Assembly: GCA_965644265.1 (NCBI GenBank)
Contig: OZ286462.1
Span: forward strand, 39,680,001 to 39,744,000
DNA: 64,000 nucleotides
Direction of reading: 5' to 3'
Source of the DNA: Glycera tridactyla
Taxonomy: Eukaryota
A model generated the notes under the pieces. That model saw only the letters and a list, made by a program, of their open reading frames with translations. It ran no database searches and had not been told where the DNA came from. This document shows, one piece after another, positions 347 to 29,788 of the stretch. Positions within the stretch are counted from its first letter, which is position 1; every line of letters begins with the position of its first letter. The position numbers and the translations under genes are program-made.

Positions 347-470
347 CTTGAGGTGAGTTGGCACGTGGGGGCTGATCTGAACCATCGTCGTTTGAGCCTC
401 GGCCGCTATCAGCATTCGAAACATCTGCCGAACATGCGCTATCCGAATCCACGGAAGTCATCTGAGCCTT
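347..470 (-). CDS. Pcdh: Protocadherin cytoplasmic exon with DSGRGS (CM1-like) motif; gene continues beyond left edge
   Basis: Acceptor gttctcgtgttgtag|AAG at 471/470 and donor CAAG|GTAGGT at 347/346. Phase-0 translation is KAQMTSVDSDSACSADVSNADSGRGSNDDGSDQPPRANSPQ(G). DSGRGS (393-410) matches the DSGxG core of delta-protocadherin tails. This frame is absent from the supplied ORF track. Confidence 0.85.
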
Positions 471-3077
471 CTACAACACGAGAACATCATATGCTTTATG
501 ATAACTTTCCAGAATTCAAGAGTAGTCCAGTGAATTTGTCCACTTGCATGACCTATGGTTATTCTGAGTTCTTTTTTAGGTCAACAACAAGCAACTGGCA
601 TGCAAGAATATCATTATAATCGATCTTTCACTGCATGATAGCACTTTTATTTACTTACAATTTCAATCAATCTGATGGGAGAAATAGAGCAGATGTCAAG
701 CTGGATCAGGTATATAAACACAAACATTAGGACTCCTGTCATTTATACTGTGTTGTCATTACCCACCATAGTCAGTTCCTTTCAATATTGGAATTCAAAG
801 AGATCGGGGCTGGCTCAAAAACAGACTTTATAGTTCAAATGGCACAACCTGCTGCCACTGAGACCGATCATCAGGCTACTGCCAGGAAATTGAACTTGGT
901 AGGAAAAATAACTAGTGAGTGTATAGCATGATGATGGAAGAATTTGCAAAGAGTTGAATATAGAGGAATCTCTTTTTAGATCACAATCCTGGTATTACTG
1001 TTACAGCGATGAGGTGTAGATGATTAGGGTTTGATACTGGTATGGCCCACTGCTGGGAAGGGAGTAAGACAATAGTATCAGGCAGACTTGTACATTTGAC
1101 ACTAGATGGGGACCTTGATCCATAACATAGCTCATCTCATTCATGTCATTGCTTCGTTTACTGTCTACGTCATCTATGCCTCAGTCAATGTTTCTGTCCC
1201 AAATAGCATCACAGAAAATCCTCATTGTTCAATAATGCAGGAAATGAGAAATGGTTTCCTTACTACTGCTGTCTACATTTTATGTAATTGTTATCAAAAG
1301 GTATCTTTTTTGAAACTTCCAACCAGGTTACAGAAACTTCCAAATTGAAATTTGAAAAGCTGGAAATTTTTAGAGAATTGGTATCACTGCTCCGAATACA
1401 TCTTCATGCTCCCTGGATAGCAAACATGTGCATGAATACATGCACGCATGCATGCACATGCACACACACACACACACACACGTGTTACATTCTCACATGG
1501 CATGACATGACATGCTGGTAGCCTGTTCACACCGACAATTGAAAAGACCGAGATTGATGGTTCATGAGTCGTGCTGTACTCCGAGACAGAGACCTGCGGG
1601 TCATCTGAGGCATAGTGTTCATCAACACACATCACATGTTCTCTATCAGGGTGCCCTGTCTCCCACAACGGCACAGCTTCACCTTGGTAAGCCCCACCAA
1701 CCACAAAAAATACCTAGCATCCTTATCAAGCTACTCGCTCTAACTGAATATACCTGTACATCATTTTAGTACCTATAATGCAGGATAAATTGTAGAATAC
1801 GTGTGCAAGTGTCAATGACAGAAGAAATAGCACAATAGAAAAAGTCAGAGTCATAATTCTTGCATAAGGCAACAATGAAGTAGCAAAAAAGCTGTGGTTG
1901 ACATGAGCAATGGAGATGAAATATCAGTGAAGAAAACAAGAAAATTTCAATGCCTAAACCACATGCGCCTCTCTATTCACAAAATGCTGATATGATTTGA
2001 GCATCATATTCGGGGGAATTTACACCATCTGCGGGTGCCACAGCATACCCAAATATCCTGAGCTCGGGAAATCTTCAGCTGGTATAAGCTAGTTCTATCT
2101 TGATAAAATGGCATAGATATAGGAATGCATTAGTGCCAAACAACATCATGGGTTCATTAGTCATGGCTGTAAATCAGATCCTATTTTCAATTTGGTGAAG
2201 TGCTATAGATCACTGACACTGCTGTATCAATACCATTCATGTTCAGTTGACTGATTTGGACTAACTGATGCAGAACGTGGAACCATCATCCAAATTGTAT
2301 AATTAACGGTAACTACACTGGATATAGTGAACAAACCAAGTATTTGATACTGTAGAGAGGGATATAGAGCCCTATCAAATGAACAAGCAGCCATCATATA
2401 GGGCCTACCATATTCTGCCAAATAGATGCAGATGCGCAATAGATACGACCCCATCCTCAGACCCCACAAATGTAAATACAGTGTACCAACAGACACACCC
2501 CTATATTCTGTCAAGAATGAAATTTACCTAATACTTCCCATGAACAATACCATGGAGCATGTACATGGTGCATTAATTTGGTAGAATACAGTCCTCCTCT
2601 GAGCAAATATAAGTTGATGGTCTGTTGGCGAGTTGGGTGATTGGTTGGTTGGTTAGAGGCATTTTAACCCGTAGGAATATGTGCAATATGTGTTCTGGAT
2701 CTGGAAGAGCAAGATGCATTGTCCCCTGCTGGCATCACTTTCATAAACCCTGAACACTGGTGATGGGTACCCAAAAAGCTTATAATCAGGAAACATGATT
2801 TAATTCAGAGATAATTATACAGGGTCTATATGAAGTCATTTTGCAACTGGGAAAAGCTGTTACATAAAGTGCTTGAATGGTATCTTAAGGTAAAATATTT
2901 TTTCAATGATAATTTCCAAGCTCCCAATTCAGACAAACCTTTACCACATAAAATCACACCGGCAAGAAGCTGCAGCAAGTGCTTCAATATTCCTCTCCAA
3001 TATCTTTGTTTCGCTGGCGGTGCAAAGCGGGGAATAAAAACCAGACTGCAGCATACCCAAAGAGTTGGCAAATTTAC

Positions 3078-3416
3078 CTCCAAGTCAAAAGGACTGCAGT
3101 CAATATCGGGAAAGTATGGCCACAAGTCATCGATGCCTGGTCGATCACAGGGCGGAATGACCATGTCTGCATCAACGGGATCGATCCCGGGTACCATGTA
3201 AGGATCCGGATTGAGCAGATGAGGATCAGGGGCGTACCCGAGGAACCGCTCCATGGGATCGGGAGGGTACCTCAGATAACTCTCTGAAGTCCTCCCATCT
3301 GCATCAACGATCCAAATTTTTGGGACCCTGGGATCGACAGGGAGATGCGAATGTTCGCCAAACTCGGGATCAGGTTTGTATTCCAGATCTCCACCATACA
3401 TAGTGGCACCCTCCAA
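3078..3416 (-). CDS. Pcdh: Predicted internal protocadherin cytoplasmic exon, 113 aa, Pro/Asp/Tyr-rich (LEGATMY...SPFDLE)
   Basis: Acceptor ccatctctttccattgcattgcgttgtag|TTG at 3417/3416 and donor GAG|GTAAAT at 3078/3077. 339 nt, open in phase 0 at both ends, matching the flanking exons. GC/CpG-rich relative to the intron, and the in-register antisense frame is also open. Membership in this gene is inferred from strand and phase. Confidence 0.72.
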
Positions 3417-6400
3417 CTACAACGCAATGCAATGGAAAGAGATGGTTAAGTGGGACAGACATGTCATCAGGGCTCAACAAATCAAAATATTCATTCTGAG
3501 ATGGGGTTGGAGTTCACAGAGATGCACTAGGATAGTGCATCAACATATAAACCAAATGTCTTCCACATTCCTCATGTCAAGTGTATTCATCGATTCTGCT
3601 ACAGTTTGAGCTATCTGAAGCTCCCTAATTCATCTACTCCAGCTTATTTCATAGACTGAGAACACAAACATGCTCACGCAATTTCATAAACAATTCACAG
3701 AATTACAAGGAACTGTGCAGATAATTATTCACATCGCTATTATATTTCCAAAATATCCGCACATTAGTGTCTGAGGCAATCCCCATCTCGAGATTGTACC
3801 AGGGTCCATTTTGTGGGTGGCAATTTAAATCACATAAAAATCTCAGTGAATGGACAGGGCGAGACATTTGTCATATTCCACATCATGGGTGGCTTTACAT
3901 GAACAAATCAATCCAGGATCTTCGCCGGGCAAAGCGACATCCGGCAATAAAATCGGGCAGATCAAAGTCGGATACGAATGCAGCATGACTCGACAATATG
4001 ATATTGTGAGTTCGCATTGTGAAGGAATGCCAGCATGCCCAATTGTGGTGATTGCAAAGCAATCTTTCAGGATACATGGATGAGTGAATGATGGAAGTTT
4101 TACTTAGGGGCAGGTGTGATGACCTACCACAGCAGGTGAGGTGTGAGGACCCTCCGTAAATATACAATCAAACAGTCATTTATCACTCGTGTGCTCACAG
4201 CAAGTTAATGGCTCAATTTCTTTTCTATTGCATGTGCAGCTTTCTTGAATACAAATCCACAAATGCGTGATGCATATGCATGGTTGTTGAATACAAACTA
4301 CATTGTATCATATTTGAAGTGATACCTGTCAGATTGTTCTGTAGCCATCACAAAACCAGGTGACCCATCATGAATAATCAGGAGGAAAGAGCCATGATCC
4401 CAGAAGTTGTAACAAAGCTTCTCCAACAAATCAACAAACTGCACTATAGTGAGGAGTCTTTCATATCACTGCAGACCAGAAAATCATCCTACACACTAAG
4501 GACCAGTCCCCTCAGCTGTCTTCAGCTTTTGTCTTCAGATATAGGTGGGTACTTTGCATCATCATTTTGAGCTAAGAGGGTCGCATTCATATTTGACTCA
4601 ATTCATTCCTGAAGAATGTCAACCATCATTGATTGATTTATTGAGTGGATTTTCAACAGCATGTATCAATGCAAATGGAGATGCCCTGTTGCCTTCCCTG
4701 AAAGGTGAAGGAGTCTCCTGCAGAAATCCCAAGTGACTGGTATAGTCTTAGTTGGCATGATTTGGAAGGGTGCTAGGTTCTCCCAGAAGATGTGAGAAAG
4801 TTCAAATTGCATTGACGACACCCCAAGAAGCTCACATAAACTGAACAAGGTCATTTGAGGCCAATTGTTGCTCTTCTAACAACACTGACTTCCAGGCCAT
4901 GTCCCTATTGAATAAATAAATCTCTCAAGCAGAAGTATTTAGCAGAAATGAAAACAGTGATTTTTCTATGACATATGACCTCAAACAGGAACTTTAGAAG
5001 AAGACATGCCGGATCTTAACAGAAATCTGATACCTGCTACTTTGAAATGTGGCACATTTCACACTGAAACCATAGAAAAGTGAAAGCATGCTCATGGGGT
5101 ACTTCATCTATTAGTACGCCCCTCCCCCCGCCCCCCCCCCCAAAAAAAAGAAGCTCATATGTTTGAATTTTAGGCGAAACAAAGAATGTCTCTTGTAAGT
5201 AGGCATGCCAGTCTTCGAAGATGAATTGAAGTAATGAAGCTGAAATACAGTTGCATATGCCTACAAAGACCACCTTTGGTCTCTGTTGAGGAGTTTTTAA
5301 CTTTTTCAGAATTCCAAAATTTTCGGAAAAATGGCATCACTGAAATGCCGACAAACTAGAAATCCTGTGATCCATGTCCATCTTTACATCATTCTTGGTG
5401 AGCTATCCATCCTCAGAGATGGTGTAATACTTTATTCAACATTAGCAAAGGGATGGCTAATGCCATGGAAACGGCTATGACCCATTAGGTGATCATCCTG
5501 GGTGTTGCATGATGGAGAGAATGCCATCAGAAGCTGGGAGTTGGACCAATATAGCATCCTGTTAACCATCACCCATGGATGCTGGCAGGAATGCAGTCAG
5601 AATGCAGGATTCTTCCATGTTCATCTTCCATTATCTTAATGCATTGTATGGACGGCAAATTTACTGATGTTCACATGTATGAATACTGCTAAAAGCCTAT
5701 CCATTATTATGTGAATTTCCTGAATATTTTTGACCAAGTTTGGGAGATCAGGAGTTTGAAATGAACCTGGAGAATTCCACATGTTACACAGGTAAGCTGC
5801 AGTTTGCAAGGGAATGACATCAAAAAGCGTCATCAGGTATGGACATAAAGGGTTGCCATGGTGACGGGTAGCAACTGTTGGATCTCCAATGATTGTTGGT
5901 TTCACACTATCACGCACATCACAGTTCATCAAGCAAGGATTCCCCCTCCCCCCGCACATGTAAAATCATGCGACATTGACTGTGTATCATCCACATGGTC
6001 TTTTAAATAATGTCTATGATCTGCACAGATAATGGTACACATGACAGAGGAATGGGGGGGGGGGGGTCACTGCTTGAATGAAAATCTCTCAGTAGTGATT
6101 TTGATGACCCAATCAAATGTGCTCTGAACACTGACCAAGTTGTGTGAGAAAAGCATCCTGTTCCCTGAATAGACCCCCCCCCCCCCCCCCATGCACACAT
6201 ACACATGCGGACAAACGGGCAATTATTCGCCCACACATTGAAAACTCTGTGACTTGATGGATTTGATGATTTTACAAGGGTGACAAATGAATATAAGGTT
6301 TCTCAGTATCTCCTATCGGCAAGAAAATGCTGCCAACATTGTGAATAAGAAAGGCTTAAAGTAACTAAACATGAAACATGGTTCAAAGACTTGGATGCTT

Positions 6401-17823: not shown

Positions 17824-18987
17824 ATGTTCATTAAATATCATCTAATATTTTCGCCAAACGTGGAATAAATATAGAGAAATTGACAAAAGTGTTAGAGGAT
17901 GAGGTAACATCTGGAACATATTTTGGTTGTCTCCATTGATGATCATGGACAAGATTCATAGATCACTCTGTATCACAGACAATAAACTACAAATTACCAA
18001 ATTAGATGCCCACCATGCGAAGTTGCCAAAACAGATGATGAAGAGCCATCACAAACAGATTGTTCTCAGCATGTGATGTCCGCCCCCATCTGAGAAGAGT
18101 GCGGGAGAAACCATAACAGGTGTCAAGATGAAGATAAACACACTGAATTACGATGCTATCAAAACCTTGATCGCACGTCTTTAACATGGAAATATCTTCC
18201 TAGCTGATGGTGATTGTAAAGTGATACTGGAATGTTGATAGAATATCACCCACATGAACACATAATTCCATGAAAATTGAACCATTCCAAGTCAGTTTGA
18301 AAAGTTGATTCAGCATTTTGTATAATATATAGTGTGTATTTCAGAAGGATGTTACACCCGTCTTCAATGGTGCAGATAAAAGACAATAGACCATTCCATA
18401 TGTTGCAGACCTGTGAAACGACAACAGACTCTGGAGTGATACAATAACAGAGAATCACCTCCCTTACGCAGCCACTCACTGATTCCCCATTGAAGTACTT
18501 TCACTATAATTGACATGTACTGAATAACCATCTGCCTTAAGCAACCACCAAACGTGGGTGCCTAATATAGGTTTGACTGTATTTCAGACTCAAAACTGTC
18601 TGGATATCAATTTACTGCAAATATCTTGAATCTGGGGAATGTTCTGATCATCAACTTTGTGGCACTCTCCATTTCACAAAGTCATGGGATGAGAATATAT
18701 ACATACATGAACATGTATAAAATAAATAGCCTGCCCCAGTACATCATGACTGCTGTCTTCTATATCACTCAACATTTAATGAGCAAGGAGTACGCTGGAT
18801 ATACAATAACAACAAACTGACATCTACTGTACTTTTAACCCACTCTATTAAACAAATTGAATTACAGCCTATCTAATCAAGTCCGTACACTCCTCAAATC
18901 AACCAAGATATTCTTGCGCGAATGTGAAATTTCCATTTCTCTCACTGAATATAGATTATAGTTTGGAATAACCACATGCTACCTAAG

Positions 18988-19036
18988 GTCGTGCTGCGAA
19001 GTATGCGATGTCGTGCTGCGAAGTATGCGATGTCGT
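18988..19036. repeat. 22-bp tandem duplication
   Basis: GTCGTGCTGCGAAGTATGCGAT twice plus a partial GTCGT. Confidence 0.9.
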
Positions 19037-19782
19037 ATTTGCAGGTGCTGCTGTTTTGACTGGTTCCCTCTCAAGCCAGGTGTGCTGACACCCGAGATGT
19101 GCCCATGCACCCACGTGGGGTCAAGCGATATATCGCTGAGAAAACCCTTCTGTGCACACCCGCTTGATGTGAGAGAAAGGCAAACATGGTGAGATCTGCA
19201 CCTAACCCCATCTAGTGGACATCATATTGCGCCTCTTTGATGTTGCACCCTTTCACCAGCGCCAACAATAGAAACCTATGTATTTATCATGAACGTAAAA
19301 TAGAGACTGCAAAATATGGCTTCAACTGATGAAATTTAACATGTATTGTAATGTTCAAACTTTCGACAATAAACATACCACTTGTGCCAACCTATTAGCG
19401 GGTTTAAATATGTTATGGTTCATGTAAATAGGTGGCTGTTTCATGTGTGTAAGAATACATTGGAAGTTGTTAATAGAGCAAATAGGTGGCCATAAAGGTA
19501 TGGATGTGCACTTGTTCGGAAATTATTGACTCAGATGTGGGATGTCCAACACCAGGTGTTGAGAAGTTGGTGTATGGTGGTTGTAGGACTGGGCGGTCCG
19601 AGGTACAACAGGTCCGCTGGTCAGTAAAAATGTTGCTGATATTACTGAAAACTATCAAACGTATGAAGGGACTTGTCTCGAATCATATCATGTATATGGT
19701 GTATTCCAGATCTACAAGCATTGGATTATCCCTTACAAGTGTCACTTTCACAGATGTTGAACAAATTGGTAACAGGTATCTA

Positions 19783-19942: not shown

Positions 19943-22506
19943 TACTACCAGTTGCTTTCCTCACTATAGCAACTGAATGCCTTCAATTCCGAATCCGAGA
20001 GCCCTAATGCTTAGATGAGATGGTCTTCAGGAATACTGCAGTTCTTCACCCAAACTAATGCTTTTTACCTGGTTTCGCAGGCATCTCGCATGTCAGTTCC
20101 CACAGACAGAGCCTGCTGGGTAAAACTGCCTCCTGCCAGCCACCCGCCTGTCAGCTGCGACCATGCGGGAAGCATTGTCTGTCTCGTACTATTGTCATGA
20201 TGAACACCTCAACTTTCTTTATATTTAGCCCATGTCTGATTGAAATTTCCAGCATGGCAATAATTGAATTCATGCTGAATCTTCTAAACTTTCCCTAACG
20301 TTAGTTAGATAGGTGAGTTATTTAATGATGAATTTTAGAATCATGGGAATGCAGCAACAAAGTCTCTTCGCTCCTGTAATACATGATCATGACAGAGTTT
20401 ATACTTCATAGATGATTATTCAAAGAAGCAATGTTTGAGGGCTGTTTGAGCAGATGTCTTGCCAAAATGATTGGGATTTTATTACCCACGAGCTCCAATT
20501 ACTGCCCATATAACACTCCTTCTTGAAATGGTCTACTCATGACAACTTTCTGAATATCAATCACAATTTTCATGGAAATTGATCGATAATGCAAATACCG
20601 AAGTTTGTTGTACAATTGGAAGGCGGGGCTCTCACTGGTGCACTAACACATTGATTAAATAGTGAATAGATGAGCACACATTTCATGTGCCACATGCAGG
20701 AAATGATAATAATTAGGTATGGCATTTTCAAATGAAAATTCATGACATCATTCAGTCAGGGGGATGATGATTCTATCAGAGAAAGAGAGAGTTTTAAGTG
20801 CAATCAGTTCTACATCCGTATTCGACTGACACCTATTCAAGCTTTGTCTGATTCCAACAATGGCTGACAGGACACCTGCTTACCCATCATGCAATGGTCA
20901 TAGCTGGTGTCACACCTCAAAATGGAGAAATATCCCCACAAAAGTTGACGGACAACATGAGAACAGTTTTGTAATTGCTATGGTGTTTTTGCTATGCTTC
21001 GCTCGCAAAAACCATCAGGTTTGCAGACAGTCCTTAATGAGTTTGTGTCGCACAAATATAGTTAGGCTCACATTACACCCAAAATACTAATAACCAAATA
21101 ATTTGATATGCACTGTGTGTTTTTAGTCTTAATCCATGTAATCATCATATTTCGATGACAACCTGGTACAATATCTATCACACAATACTAATCCTCTTCC
21201 AAACACTGCACAGGATAAATTGTGCATGATTCAACAATCCTTCTGCTCACAGTGTTTGCAATTTTTTTTTTCACCAAACAAATTTGCTTTGTCTTTCTCT
21301 GCAATCTGAACGTTGGAACAGGAATATTTAGAATAGTGTGCAACAAGTTTGTAGATCATGGAAGCTCTACCAAGGCGATGAAAAAAGTTTGTTTCCTTCA
21401 AATTTGAAAAAAAAAATTGGAACTTCATACTTTTTGTCACATGAAATTTGTTTGTCAAAAAATACATATATTCCATCTTAAGAAACTTTCTGTAACAAAA
21501 TTGTGAGTGTTATTCTTGAAATATTTGAACACAGTGTCATGAACAAAGGTCATTCAGTTGATCAAAGGGAATATATAGCAAACTAGCCGAGCGTGGGTGA
21601 GGGATACATTTCTCCATCCAAAAATAAATAAAAATATGAGAACAAATGCAAGTTATAAGCTTGGTGCTGAAAAAAGGCCACATTTTTTAGCAGGTCTGCA
21701 ATCATCAAAGCACTATATTCATAGAGTGAAAGGTACTTTCATGAAAAAGTAGAATACCTAGCATTCAGATTTTGTCGGGTGATGTCGAATGTGAAGAAAA
21801 ACAGTGGTGATACTGCAGTGAAATATGAGAACACACCACCCAGTCTGGATCCGAGGGGTTTTATATAAGTTCTTAGATTTTCTATAGGTACAGGTGCCGA
21901 CTATACCGGGAGTCATAAAAACAATGTCAGCCTTATTTGTTTCTTGTCTTCAGCTGACAATCTGTTTACATAAATACTTTAGAAGGACAATCATGACAAG
22001 CTTGAGCTAAGTACTGTGCTGCCCATGACTATGGCTCTCTTTCCTCGCCACCCCTACATATGGACCTAAGTGTGGTGTCTGGGACATGGATTATTTTCCA
22101 TTTATTCATGATCCACACTGCAAACATGGCCACTGCTTGCTGTACCTGCAGGAAGTGGTGTGAGATCTGGACACATACACATGTAGTTTTGCAGAGATTT
22201 TGGGTCAATATGGAGAACCTTGTGACTGGAGGTGCAAGATGCTTAACCTAGGCTCGCAGAAGCAGATTTAAGAGACCTTCTGCCCATACCTACACACAAA
22301 CTAAAAGAAATTGTGAGACAATGATGTTTTATCATCAAGATTCTCACATCATGGGTTTGACTGTATAAAAGCATGAAACAGATACCAGAATAATACAGCT
22401 TGAAAATAGCATAATAGTTTTCTTTCGCTGAAGGGTAGTATACTCGACAGATCGGTGATTGGTAAAGTAAAGGTTTCTCATTCTTTGTCATGGACATTTC
22501 ATAGTT

Positions 22507-25437: not shown

Positions 25438-28400
25438 CGTGGGTGGTAACAAGTCAGAATACACAGGTCTCCATCGCTTCACCTCACGCTGACACCAGCT
25501 AATTTAAAGTTCAGTATTCGTGTGTGGAGGAGGGCAGGCAGGATTGCCAGCTTCTGTATTTGTTTACTTTTGACTATCTTCAGCAAACAGAGTGACACCT
25601 TAGGTATCTCCACAGGTATGCTAACCAACTGGTAGCAGCACCCGGCAGCGTGAGAGAATTGCGCATCTCAAGTCGAAGTTTCAACATTCATTTTTAATTC
25701 ACATCATATCAAACATCTAAAATATTGGAATATCCAATCGAGAATGTTACATTTCGGACTTAAAATGAAATATTCTGTACTTCTGTATTCTTTTGATTTG
25801 AGAAACAACCAATATTAAATACTGACCAGAACATGTAGCCTGTTCAGAAACTCTATGACTCTTTTCGGAGAGGCTCAACTATGTGACTCATTCCGTGACG
25901 TTCAACTGCATGCCCCAATTCTCAGTTCTTGGCTAACCTATATGATTACACATTTGTTCGCTAAGCCATAATTTGCTCAAGAGAATATATTGATATCTCA
26001 GCCATTTCTTGTTGAAGAATACCTCTCAAATCATCCTTGTCAGTGATTTTGGCGAGCCCTCTTAGCAATGCACTTGCCTACTTTTCTACTTCGAACAACT
26101 GAAGTATTTTAATGAGTATATGAGAACATTTTGCCATTGCCCTCTATGTTCCATGTGCATCTAACTCATATTCTAGTATTCTGGATAGGAGGCAGGGTTC
26201 AGCCATTTTCCCAATTTAGCACATATGGACATTTCAAGTCTCAAACATTCAAAGTGGTTGCTCTTTTTAGGGAGAATGTGGCATGTTTTCAGCAAGGCCC
26301 TTTTTCCAGACATACAAGACAAAACATTTGCTCACGACAGGCTGAATTTAGGGGTCTTATGAAGAACAACAATAACTAGCACACTTGAAAACACTGTGGT
26401 GTAGACGCCAAACAAACGCCAAACAAACGACTTAGAGTAGGATGCAGTGTGCCTCCAGACCTTGATCCTACATAACTCTATCCTGTCAAATGCAAACAAA
26501 AGCCAGGATATTTTGCATATTATTTATGCAACAGTGCACCACCTAATCCAGGAAATCTCACAAGAATTAGACGTTTTTTTACCGATTAGTTTTTCATTGT
26601 CAAACAACTCGCTTTGCAATAGTTATATCCGGTGGGTACACAACATTCTGCTACTGGTCTATGGACTCTTTTTCCCTCACATTCATTTGCCACAGGAAGA
26701 CGCTACCTGTCAGAAATCTGAGCGATATTCAATATTATCAACGATTTACAGTGTGGACCAAATGATGCAACTTTTCCACAATCACTGATACTTTACATTC
26801 ATGGGAATGCCAGCATTTCATGAACAAAAAAGTTACGATTTCATGTTTTTTGAGTGATAATTAAAAGAAAATTTTCAGAAAAGAGGTGTAGTTCTCCGAT
26901 AAGTCAACATGGCGTATGATATAAGTGAGCCTTATGATTTCACCCTGAAAGCTGACTTCTCATGTATAATAATAATTTGATGGCAATGCCTGCTCATACT
27001 CTGGCATGAAAGACTCAACTTATAGGACAATTTATTTGGTATGGTACTATCAGGAGACCTGGTTTCAAAGTTTGAGCAAAATTCAAACGACTCATGATTT
27101 TCAATTATCACATACAAACTTTGGAATTCAGAATTTTGTTTGGTGACTTGACACCACTGGAAAATTTGAAATTTGTAAAATGTCCAGTATCGAACCCCTT
27201 ATGTTGACCCTGTCCTCCCCCCCCCCCCCACCTCCAGTGAATATCACTCAAAAATGTGTGTGATGGCAACTCTGCATACACTTGTTGAGATCAGTTTGAA
27301 TTGGACTCTCTTCAGATCGCCTGCTCCACAAAATAATCAAGAGATCATCGAAATACCAGATGTCAGATCAAGATCTTATGGATGACTGCTTCTGTATATA
27401 TCTACATGATAGAAGATGATCTGTGTATTTGTGTCTCGGTGAAAAAACTTGATAAACCATCAACAATGATCACAAAAGGAGAATCATCTACTAATATACT
27501 ATAACGGTTCAATACAATGAAAGAGTGACTTTCAAAAAAGACCAGCAAGCATGCGATGACATCAATTATTCACAATTGAGGATGAATAACCTGAAAGTTC
27601 AAATTTGAAGTCAATAAGGGTTTATATGCTGGCACACAGAGTATGGTGAACCCAGAAATATTACTCTAAAATGACAACGCTTGGAGGCCCTATGAGAGGA
27701 AGCATGATGGAACAGTCACGATTTTTATGGATATGATTTATAAATGATGACTTTGTGCATCACAATCTTGCCATATGCATTCATCACTCATACAATATTT
27801 AGATGGGATTGATGCATCAAAGTAGTTTTAATCGCAGATCTCAGTACTTATAAAAAAGATCGTCACAGGTTTGAAGTATAGAGAATGCACTCTTGCCTGA
27901 GAGAGTGTCGGGGCTGAGGGTGTTATGGCCAAAGCTCACCGGAGGTGGCCTAATCCCATCTAGGGGCGCAGGCTATTTGCATAGCCTCCTTCCAAAAACC
28001 TGTGATCTCAAAGTGACAAAGAGGATGAGGGACTCTGTAGTAATACCAACCATTGACATTTTTATCACATTTACCAAAATGCAGGTATTTCTTCTCTCTA
28101 CTTTTTCAATACATCTCCTGAACTGGGGACAAACAACCATGCCCTTGGGGATTCTCGAAATAAAATTTTGGGTCTCTCCCCTCCTTTCTCTCTCTCCCCC
28201 TCTTTCTCTCTCTCCCTCTCACCCTCCATCACTCACACATGTATGCACAAAGATGCAAACACATGCACACACACAGACATACACAGACACACAATCATTT
28301 CGGTTCAGTTTTGTACCAGGCAGAGAATGGAAAGGGAAACCTTATAACTGGAAAAGAAAGGCGTATCAGTTTTTGTATAGAACCAGCCCATTGTCCATAC

Positions 28401-29788
28401 TCAGATGTACAGAAGAGGAGAATTACAGCACACCCCCTGAAATTGATTCTGGACGTATATTAATGTCCAATCCATCTATATCCGTTGGTAATGCAGCCAT
28501 CTATACTGTTACAATGTGAAGGTGAAGGAATGCCAAACATGGGTCACCCCGCACTCTGTATGTACACTCCTGGAAAAACGGCCAGCACATCCATCCATGC
28601 ATCCTGTTTGTTGATCTTTTCTTGAAGCAGTTATAAATACTTCTTGCTGGAGTGGATCATCACACATGTGAGAAAGGTCACTTTTTATGTATGTATCATC
28701 CGTCTTTTCCTCTCCTCTTGAACCAACCTACACCTCTCAACTCTGTCTAGCTCTTCATAAATTGAAAACATTTCTTTAGATCCAATTTGTATATATTTTA
28801 GATGATATCATTAAAACTGAATTTCATCAGCATTACTCAACCTGAAAATGTGCAAAGCCTTACCTGAAGTATCAGGTTCCCGATGAATGCAAATAAGTGA
28901 GTTCAATTCAAACATTGAACGAATGCTTCATGCAATGAATATAAAAGGCATGCAACGGGGAGACATAAAGAAATGTTTGAAATGGTAATTGCAACAGCTG
29001 TCAAGAGGCAAAACGAACATTTTATGAGGTGCTCCATATGAAAAAACACTAAGCTAGATTATCTTATCAGACATCAGGGTGAATCACCAAGTACATGAAC
29101 AGTGAAACTTGTGAGGAGGGGGCTCATTGAAAGATCACCTCTGGCCAGTTACCACTTTTGCAGGGCCACCTATAAATCAAATATGTGGCCCTCCAAGAAA
29201 CCAAATATTATGAAGGTTGATCATTTATGACACTATGCCTGGCTTCAATGCAGGTTTTCACTATAAATGTATATGTGCAAATACATAGCTAAACCCACTT
29301 CCCTCTAAAAACCCTACCACAAGCTCCCCTGGACTGTTGATGATGGGAGGGGGGACTTGCCTAAGCTTCAGTATCTTGGCTTCAATTTCTGACTGCTCCT
29401 GTTCCAATAAGACGGTGAGATGACACACATTATATGTATGTTTATCTGGACCTGGATGGCTCAATCCTTGCTCCAACTGGCAGAGATCCAACCTACCTCT
29501 AATTGGAAATACTGTTTTGCAAGAAGTGGAGAGCATCAGGCTGATATTGGCAAAAGGATGCCTCTTCTAGCTGCATGGTCAGCCAGACAGATTACCTATC
29601 GTCCATCCACATTTTAGACTAAGAGTAATATTGTGTAAAACCTCAGCCCAGAGATCCCCTTTTTTATCACTAGAGTCTACTTCAAGGAAACCTCGAATTA
29701 CCACCAGAATAAAAGATTACATCACTTGCTTTTCATTTGCAAGTACTTCTACTGAACAGAGTGATCTCAAGTAATGTGAAATGAAATA

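Follow-up and report, generated by a model that had tools for sequence, protein, structure and literature searches.

We propose that the minus-strand segment 3416..3078 is a genuine internal coding exon of a protocadherin gene, that it would encode a disordered acidic spacer carrying docking motifs, and that its sequence is specific to this lineage; as a joint reading, built from sequence analysis, we hold this to be reasonably probable. The first of these elements, that 3416..3078 is a real coding exon, appears very likely from the signals described below. In our model, exon 1 (896 codons) would be joined to the candidate exon (113 codons), then to an exon encoding DSGRGS, and then to a last exon of about 233 codons, so that an acidic, proline-rich and probably disordered insert would come to lie after the juxtamembrane region and ahead of the DSGxxS motif. 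We infer both the splicing as drawn and the docking by the motifs.

Gene structure and exon boundaries

By its predicted product, the gene is a seven-repeat, delta-like protocadherin, and its 5' part occupies the minus strand of the window, the whole 64,000-nucleotide stretch of DNA analysed here. Exon 1 (56529..53842, minus strand; 2688 nt) encodes a signal peptide, seven cadherin-type repeats, a transmembrane helix and an 85-residue juxtamembrane tail, and it ends in phase 0 at the donor GAG|gtgagt. Pfam reports Cadherin (E=2e-91, in six stretches) as well as Cadherin_2 on this exon. Six to seven repeats and a transmembrane helix, all in one large exon, characterise the delta-type protocadherin ectodomain, and this is the arrangement found in exon 1. 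The layout of the clustered protocadherins was not found: there is no second ectodomain exon within the window, and the paralogues are dispersed. The protocadherin set of this genome is a dispersed single-chromosome expansion and not a variable/constant cluster. Along contig C10, between about 11 and 111 Mb, lie over 25 first exons of protocadherin genes that are 33-40% identical to exon 1 of this gene, at distances of hundreds of kb to Mb from one another.

The downstream part of the tail is encoded by two further exons. Exon 3 (347..470, minus strand; 41 codons plus one base) is Asp/Ser-rich and contains DSGRGS, a match to DSGxxS; it begins at 470 with an acceptor in phase 0 (ttgtag|AAG GCT...), encodes KAQMTSVDSDSACSADVSNADSGRGSNDDGSDQPPRANSPQ, and stops at 347 with a donor in phase 1. 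The frame is restored by the acceptor of the last exon, tttgcag|AG, which lies outside the window (G000:C10:39673318-39674015, minus strand), and the protein ends ...STSSNV before the stop codon. The last exon encodes a His/Arg/Pro/Asp-rich low-complexity tail with three NPY motifs and five P..P.[KR] sites. No homologue of it was found in a word search, and no match to it among the paralogues. All exons were searched singly, not as a joined spliced protein.

The candidate exon lies between exon 1 and the DSGRGS exon, about 50.4 kb downstream of the former. It is stop-free over its 339 nt. Upstream of it, positions 3417..3460 (minus strand) hold a possible branch site (cttaac), a pyrimidine-rich tract and ttgtag|; the acceptor reads ...ccattgcattgcgttgtag|TTGGAG, with 3416 as the first exon base, and the codon immediately 5' of the exon is TAG, made with the acceptor AG itself. 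At the other end, GACTTGGAG|gtaaat places the final exon base at 3078. The donor gtaaat (3072..3077, minus strand) follows GAG, has no G at +5, and was read from the sequence; a boundary in both composition and periodicity falls exactly here. The first-pass annotation had drawn a symmetric exon at this place, and its coordinates, phases and residue counts were all correct on recheck: the segment is bounded by AG and GT, is in phase 0/0, and is in phase with exons 1 and 3. As 339 is a multiple of three and both ends are in phase 0, the frame is kept whether the segment is included or skipped.

Does this symmetry indicate a regulated cassette exon, whose inclusion would switch on a phosphotyrosine- or proline-recognition docking module built on Y-x-P-D-P? 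We regard this as unlikely. The 0/0 phase and the moderate donor, GAG|gtaaat, both speak for it. Symmetry in itself, however, is no sign of regulation and says little about it, because an exon gained in a phase-0 intron is tolerated only if its length is a multiple of three; the DSG exons of the paralogues, moreover, all begin in phase 0. The motif content of the peptide also bears on this reading and is taken up below.

Coding signal of the candidate exon

Seven independent lines of sequence evidence indicate that the candidate exon is more than chance. Just one of its six frames is open, and that frame stays open in 0.8% of shuffles of its own bases (P=0.008); the open frame to which it belongs, 196 codons long, is the second longest on the minus strand of the window. 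Its GC content is 0.528, compared with a mean of 0.392 (sd 0.040, maximum 0.516) for 339-nt windows of the intron, and its CpG observed/expected ratio is 0.72, where the intron has 0.34, exon 1 has 0.83 and exon 3 has 1.08. Its CpG content, too, is above that of any intron piece of the same size, and when the sequence is binned at 100 nt the GC/CpG island matches 3078-3416. A codon log-odds score trained on 14,026 codons, those of exon 1 and of 16 paralogous first exons, gives +0.083 per codon for frame 0 and values below zero for the other two frames, and the value in frame 0 is reached by just 0.5% of the 197 intron open frames of at least 60 codons. Similarly, the segment has a three-base periodicity (chi2 30, 6 df) that none of 2000 shuffles reaches (P<0.0005), and its pattern is that of exon 1: position 1 is G-rich, position 2 is A-rich and G-poor, and position 3 is T-rich and A-poor. 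When the interval of about 52 kb between exons 1 and 3, without positions 1435-1491 of the intron ahead of the DSG exon, was scanned for open frames of 90-450 nt in phase 0/0 that have a pyrimidine tract and AG before them and GTR after them, 3416..3078 ranked at the top with 23.9 bits, and the highest-scoring candidate elsewhere had 6.3. The remaining lines, the end of the signal at the donor and the single copy in the genome, are described further below.

Two observations enter less favourably. Synonymous codon usage does not set the exon apart (score -0.026, with 25% of null frames higher), in a test that is powerless in this genome. In addition, the reading frame runs on past the donor for 83 codons (3077..2829) to a stop codon, within 2826..3077 (minus strand). 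This run-on counts against the candidate exon, and chance is needed to explain it. It looks non-coding: its GC content is 0.39, its coding score is -0.455, and its periodicity is at the level of noise (chi2 2.0, P=0.93). As the run-on has neither the periodicity nor the GC content nor the coding score of the exon, the coding signal stops exactly at the proposed GT.

The run-on also invites a different reading, in which the frame belongs to a separate nested gene or to an alternative terminal exon, with an ATG at 3401, a stop at 2826 and a product of 191 residues. The 83 open codons beyond the donor, an A at -3 of the ATG, and an ATTAAA at 2804, 22 nt past the stop, are all in its favour. The extension nevertheless has the composition, the coding score and the flat periodicity of intron; about two such hexamers would, by our own estimate, be expected there by chance; and a look-up of the exact 191-residue, ATG-started product found none on record. 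We consider this reading very improbable.

Could the segment instead be an intronic GC/CpG-rich island, such as an unmethylated regulatory element, in which one frame is open by chance? The island character itself would fit, as would the failure to find a homologue and the silence of synonymous codon usage. Sequencing reads bear on both readings. Two studies supply four small public runs of 53-86 million letters that contain 0.87, 0.52, 0.32 and 0.19 of the 31-mers of the exon (31 sampled), which we count towards the exon; three of these runs were guessed to be RNA by the tool, and that none is on record as RNA would fit the island. Opposed to the island are the open frame, the in-phase AG and GT sites with their pyrimidine tract, and a periodicity that resembles that of exon 1 and ends exactly at the GT donor, together with repeats that exist at the level of the peptide with synonymous differences between their copies, and orthologues that carry an exon in the same intron. 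The island explanation is accordingly given a small probability, and we continue to treat 3416..3078 as a coding exon.

Elsewhere in the large intron, a 208-codon open frame on the plus strand (27893-28519) matches no Pfam family and scores like non-coding sequence (-0.28); it probably reflects chance or a decayed element. Two patches in the middle of the 50-kb intron, 18975-19174 and 19975-20174, have GC contents of 0.53-0.54 with 12 and 7 CpG per 200 nt; a regulatory island or a repeat could account for them.

The encoded peptide: composition, repeats and motifs

The 113-residue peptide contains 20 Pro, 17 Asp and 7 Tyr and has a net charge of -17. It includes YKPDP, YPPDP, YAPDP and LNPDP as well as two copies of VDAD, as the first-pass annotation had described, and these counts exceed expectation in 100,000 composition-preserving shuffles: P=0.001 for four copies of PDP, P<1e-5 for four copies of [YL]xPDP, and P=1e-5 for two copies of VDAD. 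Aligned locally with each other, the two halves of the peptide pair residues 11-40 (3297..3386, minus strand; LEYKPDPEFGEHSHLPVDPRVPKIWIVDAD) with residues 59-84 (3165..3242, minus strand; LGYAPDPHLLNPDPYMVPGIDPVDAD) at a score of 40 (shuffle-based P=0.013). Two tandem units, each of about 30 residues, are therefore present in the exon, with the pattern L-x-Y-x-P-D-P ... D-P ... V-P-x-I ... V-D-A-D. The motif copies differ in synonymous codons (CCT/CCC/CCG and GAT/GAC), and identity between the units at the level of DNA is down to 12 nt around VDAD. Likewise, Tandem Repeats Finder reports nothing in 2700-3700, and DNA repeats within the candidate exon are just 12-17 nt long. The synonymous differences fit an old duplication that would have been held at the amino-acid level.

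What structure might such a peptide adopt? A single-sequence AlphaFold2 model is mostly coil (mean pLDDT 52, pTM 0.20), with one weak hairpin at residues 33-47. The peptide is probably disordered, and a model of such low confidence is compatible with disorder and no proof of it.

We compared the peptide with 26 standard linear-motif patterns, which were written for this analysis and not taken from ELM. Y-x-P-D-P and VDAD fit none of the 26, among whose classes are SH3, WW, EVH1, SH2, PTB, AP2, clathrin, TRAF, caspase, LIR and WIRS, and the only matches in the peptide are four generic PxxP and one YxxP. RVxF, the site that marks the conserved cytoplasmic motif CM3 of delta1-protocadherins, likewise had no match in the pattern scan. 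In both VDAD copies (3297-3311 and 3165-3179, minus strand) the next residue is small or Met (IVDAD|G and PVDAD|M); the copies loosely recall caspase-type sites, and the caspase-3/7 pattern that we tried is not fitted. For the cassette docking module introduced above, these results cut both ways. Four copies of Tyr/Leu-x-P-D-P are far above chance, and Tyr motifs, NPY and NPYY among them, are likewise abundant in the rest of the tail, outside the candidate exon; against this, the motif fits no SH2, PTB, SH3, WW or EVH1 pattern that was tried.

We favour a plainer role, in which the segment, as two old tandem copies of the unit of about 30 residues, would act as a flexible spacer presenting repeated short linear motifs to a cytoplasmic partner. 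By lengthening the distance between the membrane and DSGxxS, the insert would also shift the spacing of this degron-like motif. Tyrosine phosphorylation and phosphotyrosine docking at these sites are speculation. In a bolder version, L-x-Y-x-P-D-P...V-D-A-D would be a new lineage-specific docking module whose regulated inclusion recruits a phosphotyrosine- or proline-dependent partner and alters the control that the adjacent degron-like DSGxxS motif exerts over turnover of the receptor; we consider this version unlikely. On present evidence we see in the candidate exon a tail exon of an ordinary sort, disordered and quick to evolve, and not a new kind of system.

Does the peptide belong to a known family? 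The first-pass annotation had recognised none, and our searches agree: there are no matches among 1.84 billion cluster representatives (exhaustive search, E<=0.001), none in a word search, no Pfam family, and no usable match in the ESM Atlas, where the recognition score is low (1331). This result is weaker than it looks, as the species itself seems to be absent from these collections, judging from a best match to exon 1 that is just 49% identical. Within the 2.04-Gb assembly the candidate exon is single-copy at both the protein level (E<=10) and the DNA level. An origin from a transposon was considered and rejected, the exon being single-copy at both levels and without a Pfam family; a match to a transposon open reading frame, which the first-pass annotation had named as one of the observations that would overturn its interpretation, was looked for and not found. 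Outside the exon, a dispersed genomic repeat at 2705..2793 (41 matches elsewhere, mostly 79-98% identical) is the sole part of 2700-3700 with further copies in the genome, and it lies some 30 nt past the stop codon of the open frame. With the last exon of the same gene, the candidate exon shares a DPRVP that is not significant (P=0.22).

Related genes and known systems

The best relatives of exon 1 (P0001-P0004) are 46-49% identical to it, and their first exons end at the same ...E|gt position; we take them as likely orthologues. The nearest relatives with a species name are from the annelids Capitella and Paralvinella, at about 36%. Two of the likely orthologues, here called A and B, proved informative for the tail. 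In orthologue A (ENA ERZ21781341, L002 21980-22105), exon 2 has 42 codons (PESSRPSF...QIQ), and in orthologue B (GCA_013332975.1) the exon in the same intron has 43 codons; both are in phase 0/0, and that of A has canonical sites. The two are clearly related to one another (score 87; shuffles average 26), and neither has any similarity to the candidate exon (P=0.64 and P=0.93). An exon of the A/B type was looked for in the intron of this window, and an exon of the PDP type in the 16-kb interval between exon 1 and the DSG exon of A, and neither was found. Similarly, nothing resembling the candidate exon was seen when A and B were walked for 15-19 kb downstream of exon 1 (in A, 10 kb further), or in the 27 kb downstream of exon 1 in a third relative, C, a stretch that ends before the tail exons.

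The DSG exon of A is 76% identical over 34 residues to exon 3 and has the same phases; it was located in A only, and the walk along the contig of B stops short of the DSG exon of B. The last exon of A (in L027 11029-11728) follows directly after its DSG exon, is homologous to that of the present gene, and ends S-H-V where this gene has S-N-V, so a C-terminus resembling a class I PDZ ligand appears to be conserved between the two. In this genome, each of six paralogues has its own DSG exon, starting in phase 0 and ending in phase 1, and the core [NT]DSGRG recurs in these six and in orthologue A. Judged from these predicted structures, a phase-0 intron separates the first exon of the family from its DSG exon.

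The introns themselves differ in size. The first intron measures 50 kb here, compared with about 9 kb plus 7 kb in A, and the intron between the DSG exon and the last exon is about 6.3 kb here and less than 200 nt in A. The intron between exon 2 and the DSG exon of A contains a satellite-like tandem array (L027 6400-8600) in which one frame stays open for 367 codons and which carries a public gene call. The sole weak matches of the peptide, which fall in this array (E about 1-5), were taken as chance.

A and B carry a different exon, of 42 or 43 codons and in phase 0/0, at the place of the candidate exon; therefore the presence of an extra exon is conserved, and this particular sequence is lineage-specific. 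We thus propose that an extra symmetric exon in the phase-0 intron is common to the orthologue group and that the 113-codon sequence is a feature of the present lineage, in which the exon sequence would have been replaced or would have diverged past recognition. The suggestion of lineage specificity made by the first-pass annotation is borne out by the databases, in which no homologue was found, and by the equivalent 16-kb intron of A, from which the sequence is absent.

The same comparison raises the question of whether the exon is young, weakly included or neutral, spliced in as drifting filler with no specific partner. The tail exons of the gene evolve very fast, the last exon likewise being without a homologue or a paralogue match, and exon 2 of the orthologues is unrelated in sequence. 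CpG, on the other hand, is kept at the level of the other exons, and the motif copies are held as amino acids while their codons differ. We judge drifting filler highly unlikely and prefer the spacer with repeated motifs. Provided that the predicted splicing is right, the exon illustrates how quickly signalling tails can change in an expanded family of invertebrate protocadherins whose ectodomain, DSGxxS motif and C-terminal S-x-V end remain constant. The contrast between the 42-codon exon of two other species and the unrelated exon of 113 codons, with its repeats, in the present gene would then represent exon turnover or the de novo birth of motifs in a neuronal-type adhesion receptor, and the longer exon would supply a defined peptide for tests of binding partners.

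How does the candidate exon compare with known systems? In general terms, proline-rich regions that bind SH3, WW, EVH1, SH2 or PTB domains are, like the candidate peptide, disordered, rich in Pro and Tyr, and built around short repeated motifs; unlike them, the candidate peptide is strongly acidic and fits no standard pattern that was tried. Exon 2 of A and that of B share with the candidate exon the intron, the 0/0 phase, canonical splice sites and a Pro-rich composition, and in A the exon likewise precedes the DSG exon. They differ from it in length (42 and 43 codons compared with 113) and in being serine-rich and not acidic, without PDP or VDAD.

For the exon that follows, the relevant system is Xenopus PAPC. 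PAPC and related delta2-protocadherins have a conserved Asp/Ser-rich (DSR) region, about 25 residues long, which GSK3 phosphorylates and on which binding of beta-TrCP, ubiquitination and correct localisation depend (PMC4291225); DSGKGD is present in the text of that paper. Exon 3 resembles this region in being Asp/Ser-rich and in containing DSGRGS, a perfect match to DSGxxS. This putative counterpart of the DSR region sits in exon 3 and not in the candidate exon.

Finally, PCDH19 offers a vertebrate parallel for the candidate exon itself. Exon 2 of PCDH19 is much shorter than the candidate exon. It too is a small in-frame exon placed right after the giant exon for the ectodomain and transmembrane helix, and it too codes for cytoplasmic tail; the two have no sequence relation, and alternative use is reported for the PCDH19 exon (PMC2633044). 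Alternative splicing of delta-protocadherin tails is documented more widely (PMC7339444), in agreement with the background from which the first-pass annotation had argued, and both precedents count in favour of a regulated cassette. Of the systems considered, PCDH19 exon 2 would be the closest functional precedent, and the exon at 3416..3078 is best described, as far as its sequence tells, as a lineage-specific, repeat-bearing tail exon that stands outside any family.
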